NCBI RefSeq assembly: GCF_032062105.1
Contig: NW_026918226.1
Coordinates: forward strand, 62,001-126,000
Reading direction: 5' to 3'
Source: Saccostrea cucullata
Lineage: Eukaryota
DNA length: 64,000 nucleotides
The notes under the pieces: generated by a model
Seen by the model: only the letters and a program-made list of their open reading frames with translations
Told to the model about the DNA's origin: nothing
Databases searched by the model: none
Position numbers and translations under genes: made by a program
In this document: piece by piece, positions 21,586 to 27,530 of the stretch
Position numbering within the stretch: position 1 is the stretch's first letter
How the letters are laid out: the number at the start of each line of letters is the position of its first letter

Positions 21586-21646
21586 GGATCCCCACTGAGA
21601 ACAGCTGATAACAAGGAGCACCATCACTTGACGACTTGCAGAGCAA
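21586..21646 (+). repeat. Split direct repeat A1
   Basis: Exact match to 27876-27936. Confidence 0.95.
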
Positions 21647-21724
21647 CAGATAAGACGTGTATAGCCAGTGTTAAGAAGAAAAGACAAACAAGGATAGGTA
21701 ATATATTAATTCTAAATTTACAAA

Positions 21725-22128
21725 AGCCGTTGAGGGCTGTTGAAAATTTCCTGCCGCTGAGGGCAGAGGTTAATGCATAAAATTTTAAGCCGCTGAGGGC
21801 TAATAGATAAATTTACTGCCGCTGAGGGCAGAGTTTAAGCCGTTGAGGGCTGTTAAACATTTTCTGTCGCTGAGGACAGAAGTTAATGCATGAAATTTTA
21901 AGCCGCTGAGGGCTAACTATTTTACTGCCGCTGAGGGCAAAAGTTTAATGCATGGAATTTTAAGCCGCTGAGGGCTAAACATTTTACTGCCGCTGAGGGC
22001 AAAAGTTTAATGCATGGAATTTGAAGCCGCTGAGGGCTATTGAACATTTCCTGTCGCTGTTATTTTACTGCCACTGAGGGTAGATTTATTGATATCAAAT
22101 GCATGAACTTTTAAGCCGCTGAGGGCTT
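21725..22128 (+). repeat. Array of about 13 short hairpin motifs (AGCC/CTGCC-GCTGAG-GGCT/GGCAG) in the retrotransposon 5' leader
   Basis: The motif recurs every 20-45 bp, with two stem types alternating, separated by AT-rich linkers. Confidence 0.9.
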
Positions 22129-22555
22129 TAGATATTGTTGAATGAAATGTAGAAAGTTAAAAGCCACTTGGGCGTGTAAAACACATGAAAGTTTGATAAG
22201 CCGCGAAATGATGATGATAATCAAAATATAGAGTTTGTCTATAAGCTAATTAATGAGATATTAGGAGATACTAGTTTATGAAGATAAGCTGCTTGAAAAT
22301 TCAATGCCAGTGAAGGGCCCGGGCTGTCCACGACTATTGAATAAAATCTTTAATATACGAAAGTTATTAAGAATAGATATAAATATATAGTATATTGTTT
22401 ATATGAATTATGGCTCTTTAAGTAATGATGCGAGAGGCCGAATCATGATGATTATAAAGATTTATAGATATAACATGATCAGATGATATTAAGATCAACG
22501 TCTAGCATATTAAGTTAAATGTGGTAATCATTTTCATGTATTTTCTCATTACTAG

Positions 22556-24090: not shown

Positions 24091-25857
24091 GAATTTAACA
24101 TTTACGTTCCTGACTGGGAGAAAAGTGACGAATTTAACCCAGAGGAAATTATTTTACGTAAGAGAGAGCATCCTACTTGGACGACATTGGGAGAATGCGG
24201 TTCCAAGCCAACAATCCATGCAGATGGACAAGTATTTATGGATTCTTACAGCGATTTACTGCATTTGTCTGTAAGAAATCCTGATCGATTCATTTCGGGT
24301 GAAATTCACAAACACAAAGATGAATGGTTGCGTATAACTCAAAGAAACTCGGACAAAATGTCAACTACAATTCAAAATTGGGTCAATAATGGCATTGATG
24401 TTAGGTCCTTCCTGCGTCCGTTCAAGGGAAACTTCAAGGGGCAATCATATGATAATAGACTCCCACCAAAACAGTATTTTCAAAATTCTAAAACTTGCAG
24501 AAACTTTGTTCATTTTATTAGAGAAGAAATAAGTGAGAGACTAGTGAATGGTTCATTGAGACTATGGGGAAGGGTGGGAACAAGCTGTCTCCCTCAGATT
24601 ATCATGCCTTTGACAGTGGAGCCAAATAAGCCACGACTCTGTCATGACGAGCGCTTTTTGAACTTGTGGACTAAGGATTTACCCTTCACATTAGATACAC
24701 TTAAAGACGTTCATAGACTTGTTGGGGAACATGCTTACATGATGTGTTGCGATGAAAAATCCGGATACGATCATATTAAACTCACCAGAGAATCAGAAAC
24801 GTACTTTGGAATTCAGTTTGGGGGATGGGTCTACACATACACAACCCTACCATTTGGTTGGAAAGCCTCTCCCTACATATATCAAATGATTGGGATGCAA
24901 ATCACATCATATCTTCGAGAGAAAGGTATTCATATGGTTCAGTACATTGATGACAGGCTTGCAGTGTGTCAGCAATATGTTCAATCAGAAATTCAAGAAC
25001 AAGCTTGTCCGTTACAAATGGTGAAACTTATTGTGACCGAATTAACAGCCTTAGGATATACACTAGCTATCAAAAAGTGCCAGCTTATCCCAACTACAGT
25101 AGTCCGATACTTAGGTTTTTTAGTTGACTCTACTAAACAGGCCTACTTACTTCCATTGGATAAAAAGGAATCATTCATCAGAATACGAGAGAGTATCTTG
25201 CAAACAAATGAAGTTGATGTTAAAACACTTCAACGATTCGCCGGGAAATGTATATCAATGGCAATCGTTATACCAGGTGCCAAATTATACACAAGGGAAA
25301 TGAATTTCGCGATATCACTGTGCATGAAGAATAGTAAACAAACAATCATTTCTCGTGAGCTGCGACAAGAGATCGAACACTGGAGGTTTTTGGACGACTG
25401 GGAAGGCTTCGCGCCTTGGAGACAAGAGAAACATCTTCAAATGTCACTGTCAACGGATGCATCCTCTTTCCGCTATGGAATCTCCCTTATGTCAGGCCAA
25501 GACAAGGGTCTATCTTTTGGAGACTATTGGTCAAGCGAGGATGATAGACCGATTCATCTTAAGGAAGCATCAGCTGTCGACATTGCCCTCAAGTCCTTAG
25601 CGATGAAAATCAAAGACCACAGATTAGACATCCATGTTGACAATACCGCAGTCTTGCATGCTTGGGAAAATCAAAGGTCACGGGACCGGCATTTGGCTGA
25701 TATAATGAAAAATATATTCCAGACAGTTTGGAAATTGAATATTGACTTGAGATTACACTATGTGCCGTCAACAGAAAATACTGCAGACGCTCCATCTAGA
25801 ACTATTTCTTACACAGATGTAATGCATGCTAAATCCCCAAACATGGCAGAGGGTTGA
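24091..25857 (+). CDS. pol: Reverse transcriptase-RNase H of the DIRS-type element
   Basis: DEKSGYDH, LPFGWKASP, YIDD, YLGF; RNase H motifs TDAS, HLKE, VDN, YVPS..N.ADAPSR; no ATG at the ORF start but a TTTGCAG acceptor at 24090. Confidence 0.95.
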   Translation, partial: EFNIYVPDWEKSDEFNPEEIILRKREHPTWTTLGECGSKPTIHADGQVFMDSYSDLLHLSVRNPDRFISGEIHKHKDEWLRITQRNSDKMSTTIQNWVNNGIDVRSFLRPFKGNFKGQSYDNRLPPKQYFQNSKTCRNFVHFIREEISERLVNGSLRLWGRVGTSCLPQIIMPLTVEPNKPRLCHDERFLNLWTKDLPFTLDTLKDVHRLVGEHAYMMCCDEKSGYDHIKLTRESETYFGIQFGGWVYTYTTLPFGWKASPYIYQMIGMQITSYLREKGIHMVQYIDDRLAVCQQYVQSEIQEQACPLQMVKLIVTELTALGYTLAIKKCQLIPTTVVRYLGFLVDSTKQAYLLPLDKKESFIRIRESILQTNEVDVKTLQRFAGKCISMAIVIPGAKLYTREMNFAISLCMKNSKQTIISRELRQEIEHWRFLDDWEGFAPWRQEKHLQMSLSTDASSFRYGISLMSGQDKGLSFGDYWSSEDDRPIHLKEASAVDIALKSLAMKIKDHRLDIHVDNTAVLHAWENQRSRDRHLADIMKNIFQTVWKLNIDLRLHYVPSTENTADAPSRTISYTDVMHAKSPNMAEG

Positions 25858-26281
25858 GACTATGTTTGGACCACATACAGTAGATTTGATGGCGACAGAT
25901 ACGAATGTAATGATATCCAACTTTGGAGTTCCATTGAGACATTTCACTCAAAACCCTACTCCACAATCAGCGGGTGTTAATGTATTTGCACAAGATCTGT
26001 CAAGTGAGAAGCGCCCGTACGTGTTTCCTCCATTTCACCTCATATTCCCCGTACTGTGTCTCCTTAAAGAACAAAAAGTAAAACAGTGCACAATTATTGT
26101 GCCAATAATGTACCCGCGACCAATTTGGTGGCCACTTTTGAGTGCTCATTGTGTAAATCTTTTCACGTTAGGTAGACAAGGCGATAAAACTGTATTGCTT
26201 ATTCCATCCAAAAAAGGGTATACATCCGATAAACTGGGACTAAAATGGGAACTTAAAGCATGTAGAGTGGATTTCAGCTGA
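25826..26281 (+). CDS. Phage-type N6-adenine methyltransferase-like (MT) domain of pol, frameshifted from RT-RNaseH
   Basis: VDLMA...N, GVNVFAQD, YVFPP, IIVP...WWP motifs typical of the DIRS1/PAT MT domain; ATGC duplication at 25822-25829 shifts the frame. Confidence 0.85.
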   Translation: MLNPQTWQRVETMFGPHTVDLMATDTNVMISNFGVPLRHFTQNPTPQSAGVNVFAQDLSSEKRPYVFPPFHLIFPVLCLLKEQKVKQCTIIVPIMYPRPIWWPLLSAHCVNLFTLGRQGDKTVLLIPSKKGYTSDKLGLKWELKACRVDFS

Positions 26282-26315
26282 AATTATAATAAAATTACGG
26301 ACTCTTATTTTGTAG

Positions 26316-27530
26316 ATGGAAGATAATGAAGTTGACCTTCCTGCTATTGACAAGAGATTAAGTCAGCTTGAAAAGAACGAGGACAATAAAAAGGCCACAA
26401 AGAAGATGAAAAACTTGGAAAAAAGGGTACGACTTTTCTTATCACAGTTACCAACCTCTCCGGACTTAACAAGTATGACGCCACAAGATGTGTGCCGATT
26501 TATGGTGTGGAGTGATAGATTCGGGAAGACGAAGATACACGGGATCTCGTGTCCACACTTGGGTAAACTTGGTTTATTTGAATGCACATGCCCTACTAGG
26601 CTCGCAGCAGGAACTATTCATAATATGGTTCAACAGATATCTGAGATATTGTATGTACATGGAAGAACTCGATCATGGGATGTTCATACTAAGTCAGGGA
26701 ATCCCTGCTTGTCCCCGGAAGTAAAAAACTATGTAAAATTCTGTAAAGAAGAACAGGCAAAGTCCCATGTGTTACCTAAACAAGCCAGACCGATATTTTT
26801 GGGAAAGATAAAGAAAATGACCCTGTTTATTGATAGAGAATTTGCTCGCCCTGACCTTTCCTTAAGGGAAAAGTTTGTCTTGATTAGAGATCAAGCGATA
26901 TTCAAAATTCAGTTCTTTGCCGGGGATAGAATCAGCGATGTTTGCAATATTTTATCGCAGGAAGTTAAAAAATTGCAGGATAACTCCGGATTTGTTTTCG
27001 AGCACACCTACGGGAAGACATTACGTGGAGATGGAAAGTCAAACACCTTTGTCATAAAAAGGTCCCAAGATAAGTCAATCTGTCCTGTCTTAGGTCTTGA
27101 AAACTACTATGCCTGGTCCAAACAAAATAACGTGGATTTGAGTCTAGGATATCTCTTCAGGCCCGTATCAGAATCAGGGCGAGTACTGGATCAACAGCTG
27201 GGTTACTCGGCAATTTATGAACGGCTTCGGTTTTACCTGGTATCTTTGGGTATTTATGAAGGAGAAACCCCACACAGTCTACGAGGAGGTTTTGCTGTAA
27301 CCATGGCGATCTCAGGCACTGCGACATCTCCCCAGGAACTCATGAAGCATGTCGGATGGTCGAGTGAACGATCAGCTTATTATTACAGCAGGACGAAAAC
27401 CTTGACAGATGCTAGCACATTAGCAAGCAATATTGCCAATCTATCAGCAGACACAGACGAAATTGAAGGATTTTACAAAACACATGGAGAATTTTCCTCT
27501 CTTAGTCCAGCCTTTAAGCCGACAAATTAA
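26316..27530 (+). CDS. Tyrosine recombinase with N-terminal ALOG domain, 404 aa
   Basis: Catalytic R (AGDRISD), K (GKT), HSLR, GW and Y (SAYYY); ALOG zinc-ribbon insert FGKTKIH...CPHLG...CTCPTR.A.G and NP...V..Y...EQAK. Confidence 0.95.
   Translation: MEDNEVDLPAIDKRLSQLEKNEDNKKATKKMKNLEKRVRLFLSQLPTSPDLTSMTPQDVCRFMVWSDRFGKTKIHGISCPHLGKLGLFECTCPTRLAAGTIHNMVQQISEILYVHGRTRSWDVHTKSGNPCLSPEVKNYVKFCKEEQAKSHVLPKQARPIFLGKIKKMTLFIDREFARPDLSLREKFVLIRDQAIFKIQFFAGDRISDVCNILSQEVKKLQDNSGFVFEHTYGKTLRGDGKSNTFVIKRSQDKSICPVLGLENYYAWSKQNNVDLSLGYLFRPVSESGRVLDQQLGYSAIYERLRFYLVSLGIYEGETPHSLRGGFAVTMAISGTATSPQELMKHVGWSSERSAYYYSRTKTLTDASTLASNIANLSADTDEIEGFYKTHGEFSSLSPAFKPTN

Follow-up and report, generated by a model that had tools for sequence, protein, structure and literature searches.

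Organisation of the element and its splice sites

The window analysed here is a stretch of 64,000 nucleotides (nt) from contig JAVVLV010000363.1 of Saccostrea cucullata (assembly GCA_032062105.1), to which all positions given below refer. Its plus strand harbours, at 21586-28149, a retrotransposon of the DIRS order, and the present work deals with the manner in which the proteins of this element may be produced by splicing. Five main open reading frames (ORFs) are found on the plus strand across the element region. Judged by its repeat layout and by the gene order gag, reverse transcriptase-RNase H-methyltransferase-like pol (RT-RH-MT-like) and tyrosine recombinase (YR), on which the PAT-like assignment rests, the element is a young, i.e. 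recent, copy of a PAT-like split-direct-repeat retrotransposon belonging to the ALOG-YR clade. A sequence-only reading of the same DNA had proposed a DIRS/PAT-like element, which is borne out by the split direct repeats as well as by matches to RVT_1 and Phage_integrase. The repeats A1 (21586-21646), B1 (27802-27876), A2 (27876-27936) and B2 (28075-28149), all on the plus strand, follow each other in the order A1...B1 A2...B2 with 100% identity within each pair, which is the arrangement by which PAT-like elements are recognised. A1 forms the left and B2 the right end of the element, the former being confirmed by comparison with a second copy, L006, where identity amounts to 100% from 21586 onwards versus about 48% upstream thereof. 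The same layout is present in a sister family, L001. Inverted terminal repeats, as expected for DIRS1-like elements sensu stricto, were not found in the element; a 26-nt inverted match at 28150-28175 belongs to the flank and lies outside of it, and L006 differs upstream of 21586. No aspartic protease or DDE integrase family was detected by Pfam in any ORF at E ≤ 0.01; repeat layout, gene order and the lack of these two enzymes are shared with PAT-like elements in general. At least three near-identical loci of the element family exist. Gag and YR of the present copy are without breaks and its pol carries one frameshift and no in-frame stops; L006 shows no breaks in its genes and contains pol as a single ORF.

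The left end of the element opens a putative leader (5' untranslated) exon at 21586-21697 (plus strand, as are all exons and introns described below) which ends at the donor TAG|GTAATA (21697|21698), a site already pointed out by the sequence-only reading as AG|GTAATA and confirmed here. The context of this donor is identical in L006 and in L007, a locus of S. echinata, and positions 21647-21697 are 94% identical to the latter; in family L001 a donor is located 28 nt downstream of its own A1. The putative leader intron (21698-22555) is 77% identical to L007 with 393 gap columns, compared to 84-94% for the flanking exons, and its TAG acceptor ends at 22555, immediately in front of the gag ATG at 22556. 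Much of this intron is occupied by a tandem repeat array with units of ~62 nt (about 21724-22130), each of which contains two GCCGCTGAGGGC-like motifs; the length of the array differs between copies, as reflected by the gap columns.

The first gag exon, E1 (22556-22876), comprises exactly 107 codons and is followed by the phase-0 donor AAG|GTATAC (22876|22877), which matches the donor consensus at six of nine positions. Gag intron 1 (22877-23083) is a GT..AG intron of 207 nt with stops in all frames; its CAG acceptor ends at 23083 and the following codon stands in the frame of the gag body at phase 0. The gag body (E2 to stop, 23084-23731) encodes a CCHC zinc knuckle near its C-terminus. Its first 43 codons, designated E2a (23084-23212), end at a second phase-0 donor, AAG|GTGAGG (23212|23213), with eight of nine consensus matches, a level reached by 0.02% of the window positions. 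This donor as well as a third one, CAA|GTATTT at 24231|24232, is absent from the sequence-only reading. The intron starting at 23213 would extend to 24090, and its non-coding 3' part (23732-24090), which ends at the pol acceptor, is referred to as the gag-pol spacer. In two loci of a Mytilus-type family, L002 and L008, a further interruption of ~200 nt divides E1 at a common position and, in L002, begins with a GT; the shared domain of that family thus seems to harbour one more intron.

At the 5' end of pol (24091-26281) a CAG ends at 24090 and the next codon stands in the pol frame at phase 0. As the sequence-only reading had stated, pol does not open with an ATG; counted from the acceptor, codon 50 is the earliest ATG in frame. 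Pol, which in this copy carries the mentioned frameshift, comprises RT, an RNase H region and a putatively MT-like C-terminal region. It matches Pfam RVT_1 with an E value of 1.4e-18, shows weak matches to retroviral RT chains and has 495 relatives. In relatives it is encoded as a single protein of about 720-740 amino acids (aa). The C-terminal region of pol is conserved among relatives, and for it searches of Pfam and of PDB sequences returned no named methyltransferase match. The first 47 pol codons, E3 (24091-24231), recur as a mini-exon in the YR gene model described below; E3 is 93.6% identical to L007 and its donor CAA|GTATTT is weak with six of nine consensus matches. YR (26316-27530) starts with an ATG at 26316, preceded at phase 0 by a TAG acceptor ending at 26315, and possesses an ALOG-type N-terminal DNA-binding domain (Pfam ALOG, residues 38-141, E 9.5e-14) followed by Phage_integrase (residues 190-360). 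In distant relatives (L016-L022, L041, L046, L050, L061 and protein P0237) the YR exon opens with a small CxxC...CxxC zinc-ribbon segment matching the FCS-type ribbon of PMC3537659, which is absent from the YR of the present family.

AG sites scoring at least as high as the four acceptors make up 0.05-0.44% of the window positions, and one of them adjoins each ORF opening. The letters, coordinates and phases which the sequence-only reading had given for the sites at 22555, 22876, 23083, 24090 and 26315 all proved correct upon direct reading.

Gene models, predicted Gag fold and conservation across relatives

Protein databases were searched exon by exon, and the gene models retrieved were compared piecewise with the exons of the window. 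RefSeq annotates the present locus as LOC134259601. Its protein P0425 (XP_062598190.1), found via the YR search match P0305 and its cluster, derives from locus L090, which is identical to window positions 21056-29030. P0425 consists of E1 (22556-22876, residues 1-107), E2a (23084-23212, residues 108-150), E3 (24091-24231, residues 151-197) and YR (26316-27527, residues 198-601) with 0 mismatches in 601 residues. The same succession of E1, E2a, E3 and YR is present in P0305 and in P0306 from S. echinata. In the RefSeq Gag model P0001 (322 aa, 99% identical) E1 is joined to the gag body exactly at 22876|23084, with 2 mismatches in the 215 residues of the latter. P0020, encoded by L001, a second S. 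cucullata family which is ~51% identical in pol, joins E1, E2a and pol via a homologous AAG|GTGAGA donor, and in the Mytilus model P0155 on L002 a homologous AAG|GTGAG donor is joined to the pol acceptor. P0351 and P0319 from C. gigas appear, by protein sequence, to connect E2a straight to YR. RefSeq or GenBank models fusing E1 to pol or to YR were encountered in six genera, Saccostrea, Crassostrea, Mytilus, Ostrea, Argopecten and Lineus, and a fusion model is present in Pinctada too. All fusion models seen place at least 40 residues between E1 and the enzyme, and a junction leading straight from codon 107 to either enzyme occurs in none of them; in the five junctions which were read directly, the donor is the gag-internal one following the 43-codon E2a.

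According to the sequence-only reading, a shared N-terminal Gag exon whose donor follows codon 107 is spliced in frame to Gag, Pol and YR, and the introns survive since unspliced RNA is the template. As far as comparative sequence and gene models go, this core idea stands, the size of the shared module being about 150 residues rather than 107. The branch point, however, has to be moved, as every gene model seen uses the stronger phase-0 donor located 43 codons further on, at 23212|23213. In these models the intron between 22876 and 23084 behaves as a constitutive gag intron.

A structure prediction for the 107-residue exon, as proposed by the sequence-only reading, was obtained from a model of the database protein P0001 based on an 80-sequence alignment (mean predicted local distance difference test score, pLDDT, of 81). 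Residues 1-100, corresponding to E1, are predicted to form a compact helical domain with pLDDT >90. Residues 100-122, which contain the E1|E2 junction, are predicted to be disordered, followed by a long helix (residues 125-156) which the 23212 donor cuts at residue 150; beyond it come a bundle of helices, a second disordered segment and, last, the zinc knuckle. Searches of this Gag model against PDB and BFVD yielded no match below E 0.1, and no claim can be made in favour of a likeness to capsid, Arc or LAP2alpha. The E2a helix and the first helix of YR share 38% identity over 42 residues (23129-23254 versus 26340-26462; E 4e-7 for the pair), and an E2 profile likewise matches the YR N-terminus (E 2e-4). 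The long Gag helix and the first YR helix could represent a duplicated coiled-coil-like segment common to both.

Searching E1 alone against 1.84 billion representative proteins returned 187 homologues at E ≤ 0.001. Most of them are stand-alone ORFs of 100-170 aa which end just past the domain, and this is what an intron at that point would produce. We further compared 80 related loci from metagenome and host-associated assemblies, in which the domains were located by profiles built from search matches. The gag ATG adjoins a pyrimidine-tract acceptor or lies within about 25 nt downstream of one in 9/9 loci, the E1 donor is a GT at phase 0 in all five intact loci, and the gag-body acceptor, read by eye, is at phase 0 in 9/9. 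Pol opens with a tract plus AG at phase 0 in each of the ten loci read, eight of which have no ATG there. The YR openings read in relatives behave as those of pol. In an unbiased score covering relatives from many marine invertebrates, for which the best AG near each ORF opening was taken and its phase recorded, the best AG is at phase 0 in 29/31 contexts for pol (14/16 if AGs belonging to a closing TAG stop are excluded) and in 24/29 for YR (11/16 after the same exclusion). The gag-internal donor is kept as AG|GTGAGR, encoded by a valine GTG and an arginine AGR codon, in six bivalve-type or nemertean-type lineages.

All eight splice sites are identical in L006. Compared to L007, gag intron 1 shows 73% and the leader intron 77% identity, both with many indels, while the exons range from 84% to 94%; the introns diverge faster, a comparison which the sequence-only reading had proposed. 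L007 itself is decayed: one frame change is present in gag, about three frame changes plus four stops in pol and one large insertion in YR, and changes affect one splice site as well as two start codons. A further pair of loci, L004 (Logan SRR3401642) and L005 (JGI 3300039062), exhibit a continuous gag from which intron 1 is absent. Since both keep the upstream acceptor and L004 retains the gag-pol spacer too, we read them as intron-loss families and not as mRNAs.

The gag-pol spacer and the surroundings of the element

The gag-pol spacer contains 10-14 stops in each frame. Hence, neither readthrough nor a frameshift can lead from gag to pol, and both were ruled out. It is as conserved as coding sequence, with 85.7% identity to L007. 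In a relative, L032, a single uninterrupted frame covers both the gag-body and the pol homology, and the gag-pol intron may be missing from this family.

Within the spacer, positions 23950-24000 (plus strand) form a conserved structured element with a core of ~50 nt in which an outer helix encloses two hairpins. A covariance model, R1, built from six sequences, matches 11 loci in addition to the window at E ≤ 0.01; beyond the six sequences used for building, four instances were found at this threshold, in L089 (3e-15), L061 (2e-8), L014 (6e-8) and L003 (0.007). All instances are on the plus strand, and those whose distance was taken precede the pol acceptor by 50-90 nt. Compensatory changes are observed at five pairs, and 92% of the alignment cells are paired versus 31-60% in controls with slid partners, the former figure being flattered as the alignment was fitted to the R1 model itself. 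No Rfam family matches the element, and a hammerhead-like reading was dropped since the core motifs are absent and Rfam gave no match. Given its fixed position beside the pol acceptor, control of splicing or retention of unspliced RNA is our leading guess at its role.

The B1/A2 junction is palindromic (27860-27895), a 7-nt spacer being flanked by inverted arms which measure 9-10 nt. The B/A junction of L001 (~11185-11215) is likewise palindromic; across both families the spacer measures 7-8 nt and the letters differ. In appearance it resembles the core site of a tyrosine recombinase, located where the circle junction is presumed to lie.

Both flanks resemble the reverse complement of repeat A. 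On the left, positions 21563-21583 match part of it (18/21 identical; score 15 versus a maximum of 13 in shuffled sequences) and, on the right, 28150-28175 match the adjoining part (23/26 identical; score 20 versus a shuffle maximum of 12), so that both exceed all of the 500 shuffles used for comparison. The copy seems to sit inside an inverted A-like sequence, as would be expected if it had inserted into what is left of a related element, or if targets similar to its own repeat are preferred. The situation recalls DIRS-1, which prefers to insert into other copies of itself. No A-like flank of this kind was seen by eye in L001.

Just upstream of the element a 58-nt tandem duplication is present (21406-21520), and several short inverted-repeat pairs with arms of 41-71 nt, located further upstream at 20406-20940, possibly represent non-autonomous elements of small size. 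On either side of the element, and both on the minus strand, lies an ORF devoid of introns (17698-19080, 460 aa; 30588-31922, 444 aa); the two show weak matches to Mab-21 nucleotidyltransferases (cGAS-like). They are probably a tandem pair, the second scoring 24.0 bits versus a Pfam gathering cut-off of 24.1. An N run at 36529-36671 represents an assembly gap or a masked stretch. The Rfam scan gave only a sub-threshold snoRNA match at A1 (24 bits versus a gathering score of 40), which we take as chance.

A proposed splicing scheme and its alternatives

On the basis of comparative sequence and gene models we favour, with a probability of about 70%, a scheme in which one transcript contains constitutive leader and gag introns as well as a regulated gag-internal donor, giving rise to Gag and to Gag(N150)-Pol and Gag(N150)-YR fusions while its unspliced form serves as template. 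The sites with their phases and conservation, the lack of an ATG and of any open frame in front of pol, and the gene models themselves are directly observed; use of the junctions in RNA, dominance of one donor and any role of the shared module or of the RNA structure are inferences. A single RNA would be transcribed from the A1 region and expressed by alternative splicing of exons whose boundaries are all at phase 0. Removal of the leader intron (21698-22555) would place the leader exon beside the gag ATG, and removal of the gag intron (22877-23083) would join E1 to the gag body. If the donor 23212|23213 is left unused, Gag of 322 aa would result; if it is used, the first 150 residues of Gag, comprising the helical E1 domain, the disordered linker and the start of the long helix, would be joined in frame to pol at 24091. 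Alternatively, this module would be joined to YR at 26316, a route which in the model of the present locus passes through the 47-codon mini-exon 24091-24231. Fully unspliced RNA would be the replication template, because of which every genomic copy would keep its introns. The structure at 23950-24000 is a candidate cis-regulator, acting either on the choice of the pol acceptor or on the retention of unspliced RNA. In place of the one donor with three acceptors of the sequence-only reading, a set of exons bounded throughout at phase 0 and provided with three donors or more is the better description.

Several observations weigh against this scheme. The gene models may be ab initio predictions or projections by homology. 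P0306 lies on a decayed S. echinata copy in which one of eight sites is non-canonical, and splicing of that copy itself can therefore not be the basis of this model. Phase 0 of the best AG at the gag-body opening, found in 16/22 contexts, drops to 6/12 upon exclusion of closing TAG stops, which is not significant. The consensus of the gag-internal donor is lost in more distant, cnidarian-type loci. The E1 and E3 donors are both weak, with six of nine consensus matches each, and conservation of the E3 donor outside the present family is not apparent. With a donor that is weak and specific to this family, the E3 mini-exon would be the least secure part of the scheme. The YR of this family has its own ATG at the acceptor and does not require fusion, and pol of this copy is frameshifted once. 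Finally, Logan contigs of the close relatives L088 and L089 are unspliced or genomic, and among the Logan matches listed no ORF fuses E1 to pol or YR.

Among the alternatives, the one that survives best, unlikely as it appears to us, is that the leader donor 21697|21698 joins the acceptor of either the gag ATG or the YR ATG. YR would then be translated unfused from its own first AUG in the manner of env in simple retroviruses, possibly side by side with the fusion route. Both ATGs indeed stand directly after TAG acceptors (22555|22556 and 26315|26316), and the leader donor is identical in three copies. In most relatives, however, the YR acceptor is not followed by an ATG, so that a coding exon has to be supplied from further upstream; Gag exons are part of every RefSeq YR model encountered, and pol, whose first ATG is codon 50, cannot be served in this way.

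Slightly less probable still is the original proposal that the codon-107 donor 22876|22877 forms the branch point and leads directly to 23084, 24091 or 26316, with E1 alone as the shared module. All four sites are at phase 0, so that every combination is in frame. In addition, E1 is predicted to be a self-contained folded domain with the junction in a disordered linker, and its donor may be the only one available in distant loci without the gag-internal donor. Against this stand the at least 40 residues which every fusion model keeps beyond E1, the use of the gag-internal donor in the five junctions read directly, and the consensus matches of the two donors (six of nine at 22876 versus eight of nine at 23212). 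Next to the gag-internal donor, the codon-107 donor may serve as a minor path.

We regard it as improbable that only the leader and gag introns are real, that pol and YR are translated by internal or non-AUG initiation on unspliced or separately initiated RNA, and that the fusion models are artefacts of predictors which chained open frames. The model on a decayed copy with a non-canonical site would be in line with this, as would the messy models P0014, whose start lies within an intron, and P0020, both of which terminate in odd YR fragments, as would classical descriptions of DIRS elements, which invoke separate or overlapping ORFs (PMC3266345). It leaves unexplained, however, why a tract plus AG at phase 0 is found at the first conserved codons of pol (29/31 contexts) and YR (24/29), why pol is devoid of an ATG, and why a consensus donor is held in gag by AGR arginine codons across six lineages. 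That the element is a dead relic in which decay created the gaps between the ORFs and the splice-like letters are coincidence is hardly credible: in spite of the single pol frameshift and of an earlier reading of interruptions in oyster copies as inactivation (PMC3537659), its repeats are 100% identical, its gag and YR are intact, L006 is without breaks, and families with no more than ~50% identity have their interruptions at matching places of the protein, likewise bounded by GT..AG and at phase 0.

The spliced expression favoured here invites comparison with known systems. DIRS-1 of Dictyostelium and DIRS1-like elements sensu stricto share with the present element RT plus tyrosine recombinase and an internal junction related to the termini. 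They differ in that the repeats are split and direct here, the ORFs do not overlap, and stops in all frames part gag from pol. Simple retroviruses produce one primary transcript whose unspliced form is both genome and gag mRNA, while a 5' donor is combined with alternative acceptors and the introns persist in the integrated copy. By analogy, the proposed scheme would have in common with them the single transcript, the unspliced genome, alternative downstream acceptors and retained introns. In contrast, retroviral Pol is obtained by frameshifting or readthrough and not by splicing, whereas here the donor lies 150 codons into gag and would lead to N-terminal Gag fusions; moreover, constitutive introns occur here as well and there is no env. 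Functional introns are also kept in elements giving rise to the copia gag mRNA and the gypsy-type env mRNA, in plant Ogre and BARE and in intron-retaining Penelope-like elements, splicing setting the ratio of products. These spliced long terminal repeat (LTR) retrotransposons and Penelope-like elements differ from the present one in belonging to other orders, and we know of none among them with an all-phase-0 exon set fusing one Gag module to each enzyme.

Closest by content is the ALOG-recombinase class of DIRS1-like retroposons described by Iyer and Aravind 2012 (PMC3537659) from marine metazoans including Crassostrea, with which the present element shares a zinc-knuckle Gag, an RT accompanied by RNase H, a YR with an ALOG N-terminal domain and, putatively, a methylase-like region. 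That account reads stops and frameshifts in oyster copies as recent inactivation and mentions neither introns nor splicing; here, most interruptions appear to be conserved phase-0 introns. Splicing is likewise unmentioned in an overview of DIRS1-like elements (PMC3266345). We found no published account of spliced expression in PAT-like elements, and in the searchable literature none of natural introns in DIRS, PAT or Ngaro elements, a prior mention in Goodwin and Poulter 2001 or in reviews by Poulter being possible. Abascal et al. 2015 (PMC4495291) described the exaptation of a LAP2alpha domain from a DIRS1-like gag and inferred that a splice acceptor had been brought along by the captured gag itself. 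In keeping with this, an acceptor adjoins or shortly precedes the gag ATG in the 9/9 loci mentioned above; the LAP2alpha case differs in that it concerns vertebrate DIRS1-like elements and in that the Gag studied here has no Pfam LAP2alpha match. Gag-borne acceptors would fit the earlier inference that host genes captured DIRS gag as a ready-made alternative exon (PMC4495291).

For DIRS-order elements with non-overlapping ORFs, the way in which Pol and recombinase are produced has always been obscure, and a conserved splice scheme, if true, would answer this for a large clade. In a tentative extension which we rate a little below even odds, all DIRS-order elements with an ALOG recombinase, whether in bivalves, nemerteans or cnidarian-type hosts, would make their enzymes only as spliced products, exons bounded throughout at phase 0 attaching a common N-terminal Gag module of ~150 residues to each. 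Both enzymes could in this way reach Gag assemblies without a Gag-Pol frameshift, a conserved intronic RNA structure next to the pol acceptor would set the balance between spliced and genomic RNA, and many copies scored as degenerate would be intact. Annotators requiring continuous ORFs will undercount intact copies, and genome annotations list such loci as 'uncharacterized protein' genes. The covarying structure would offer a candidate regulatory element without an Rfam family. If the scheme is true, splicing would join frameshifting and readthrough as a third way of fusing Gag to an enzyme, and retrovirus-like control of splicing would have arisen in a lineage which possesses neither LTRs nor an integrase.

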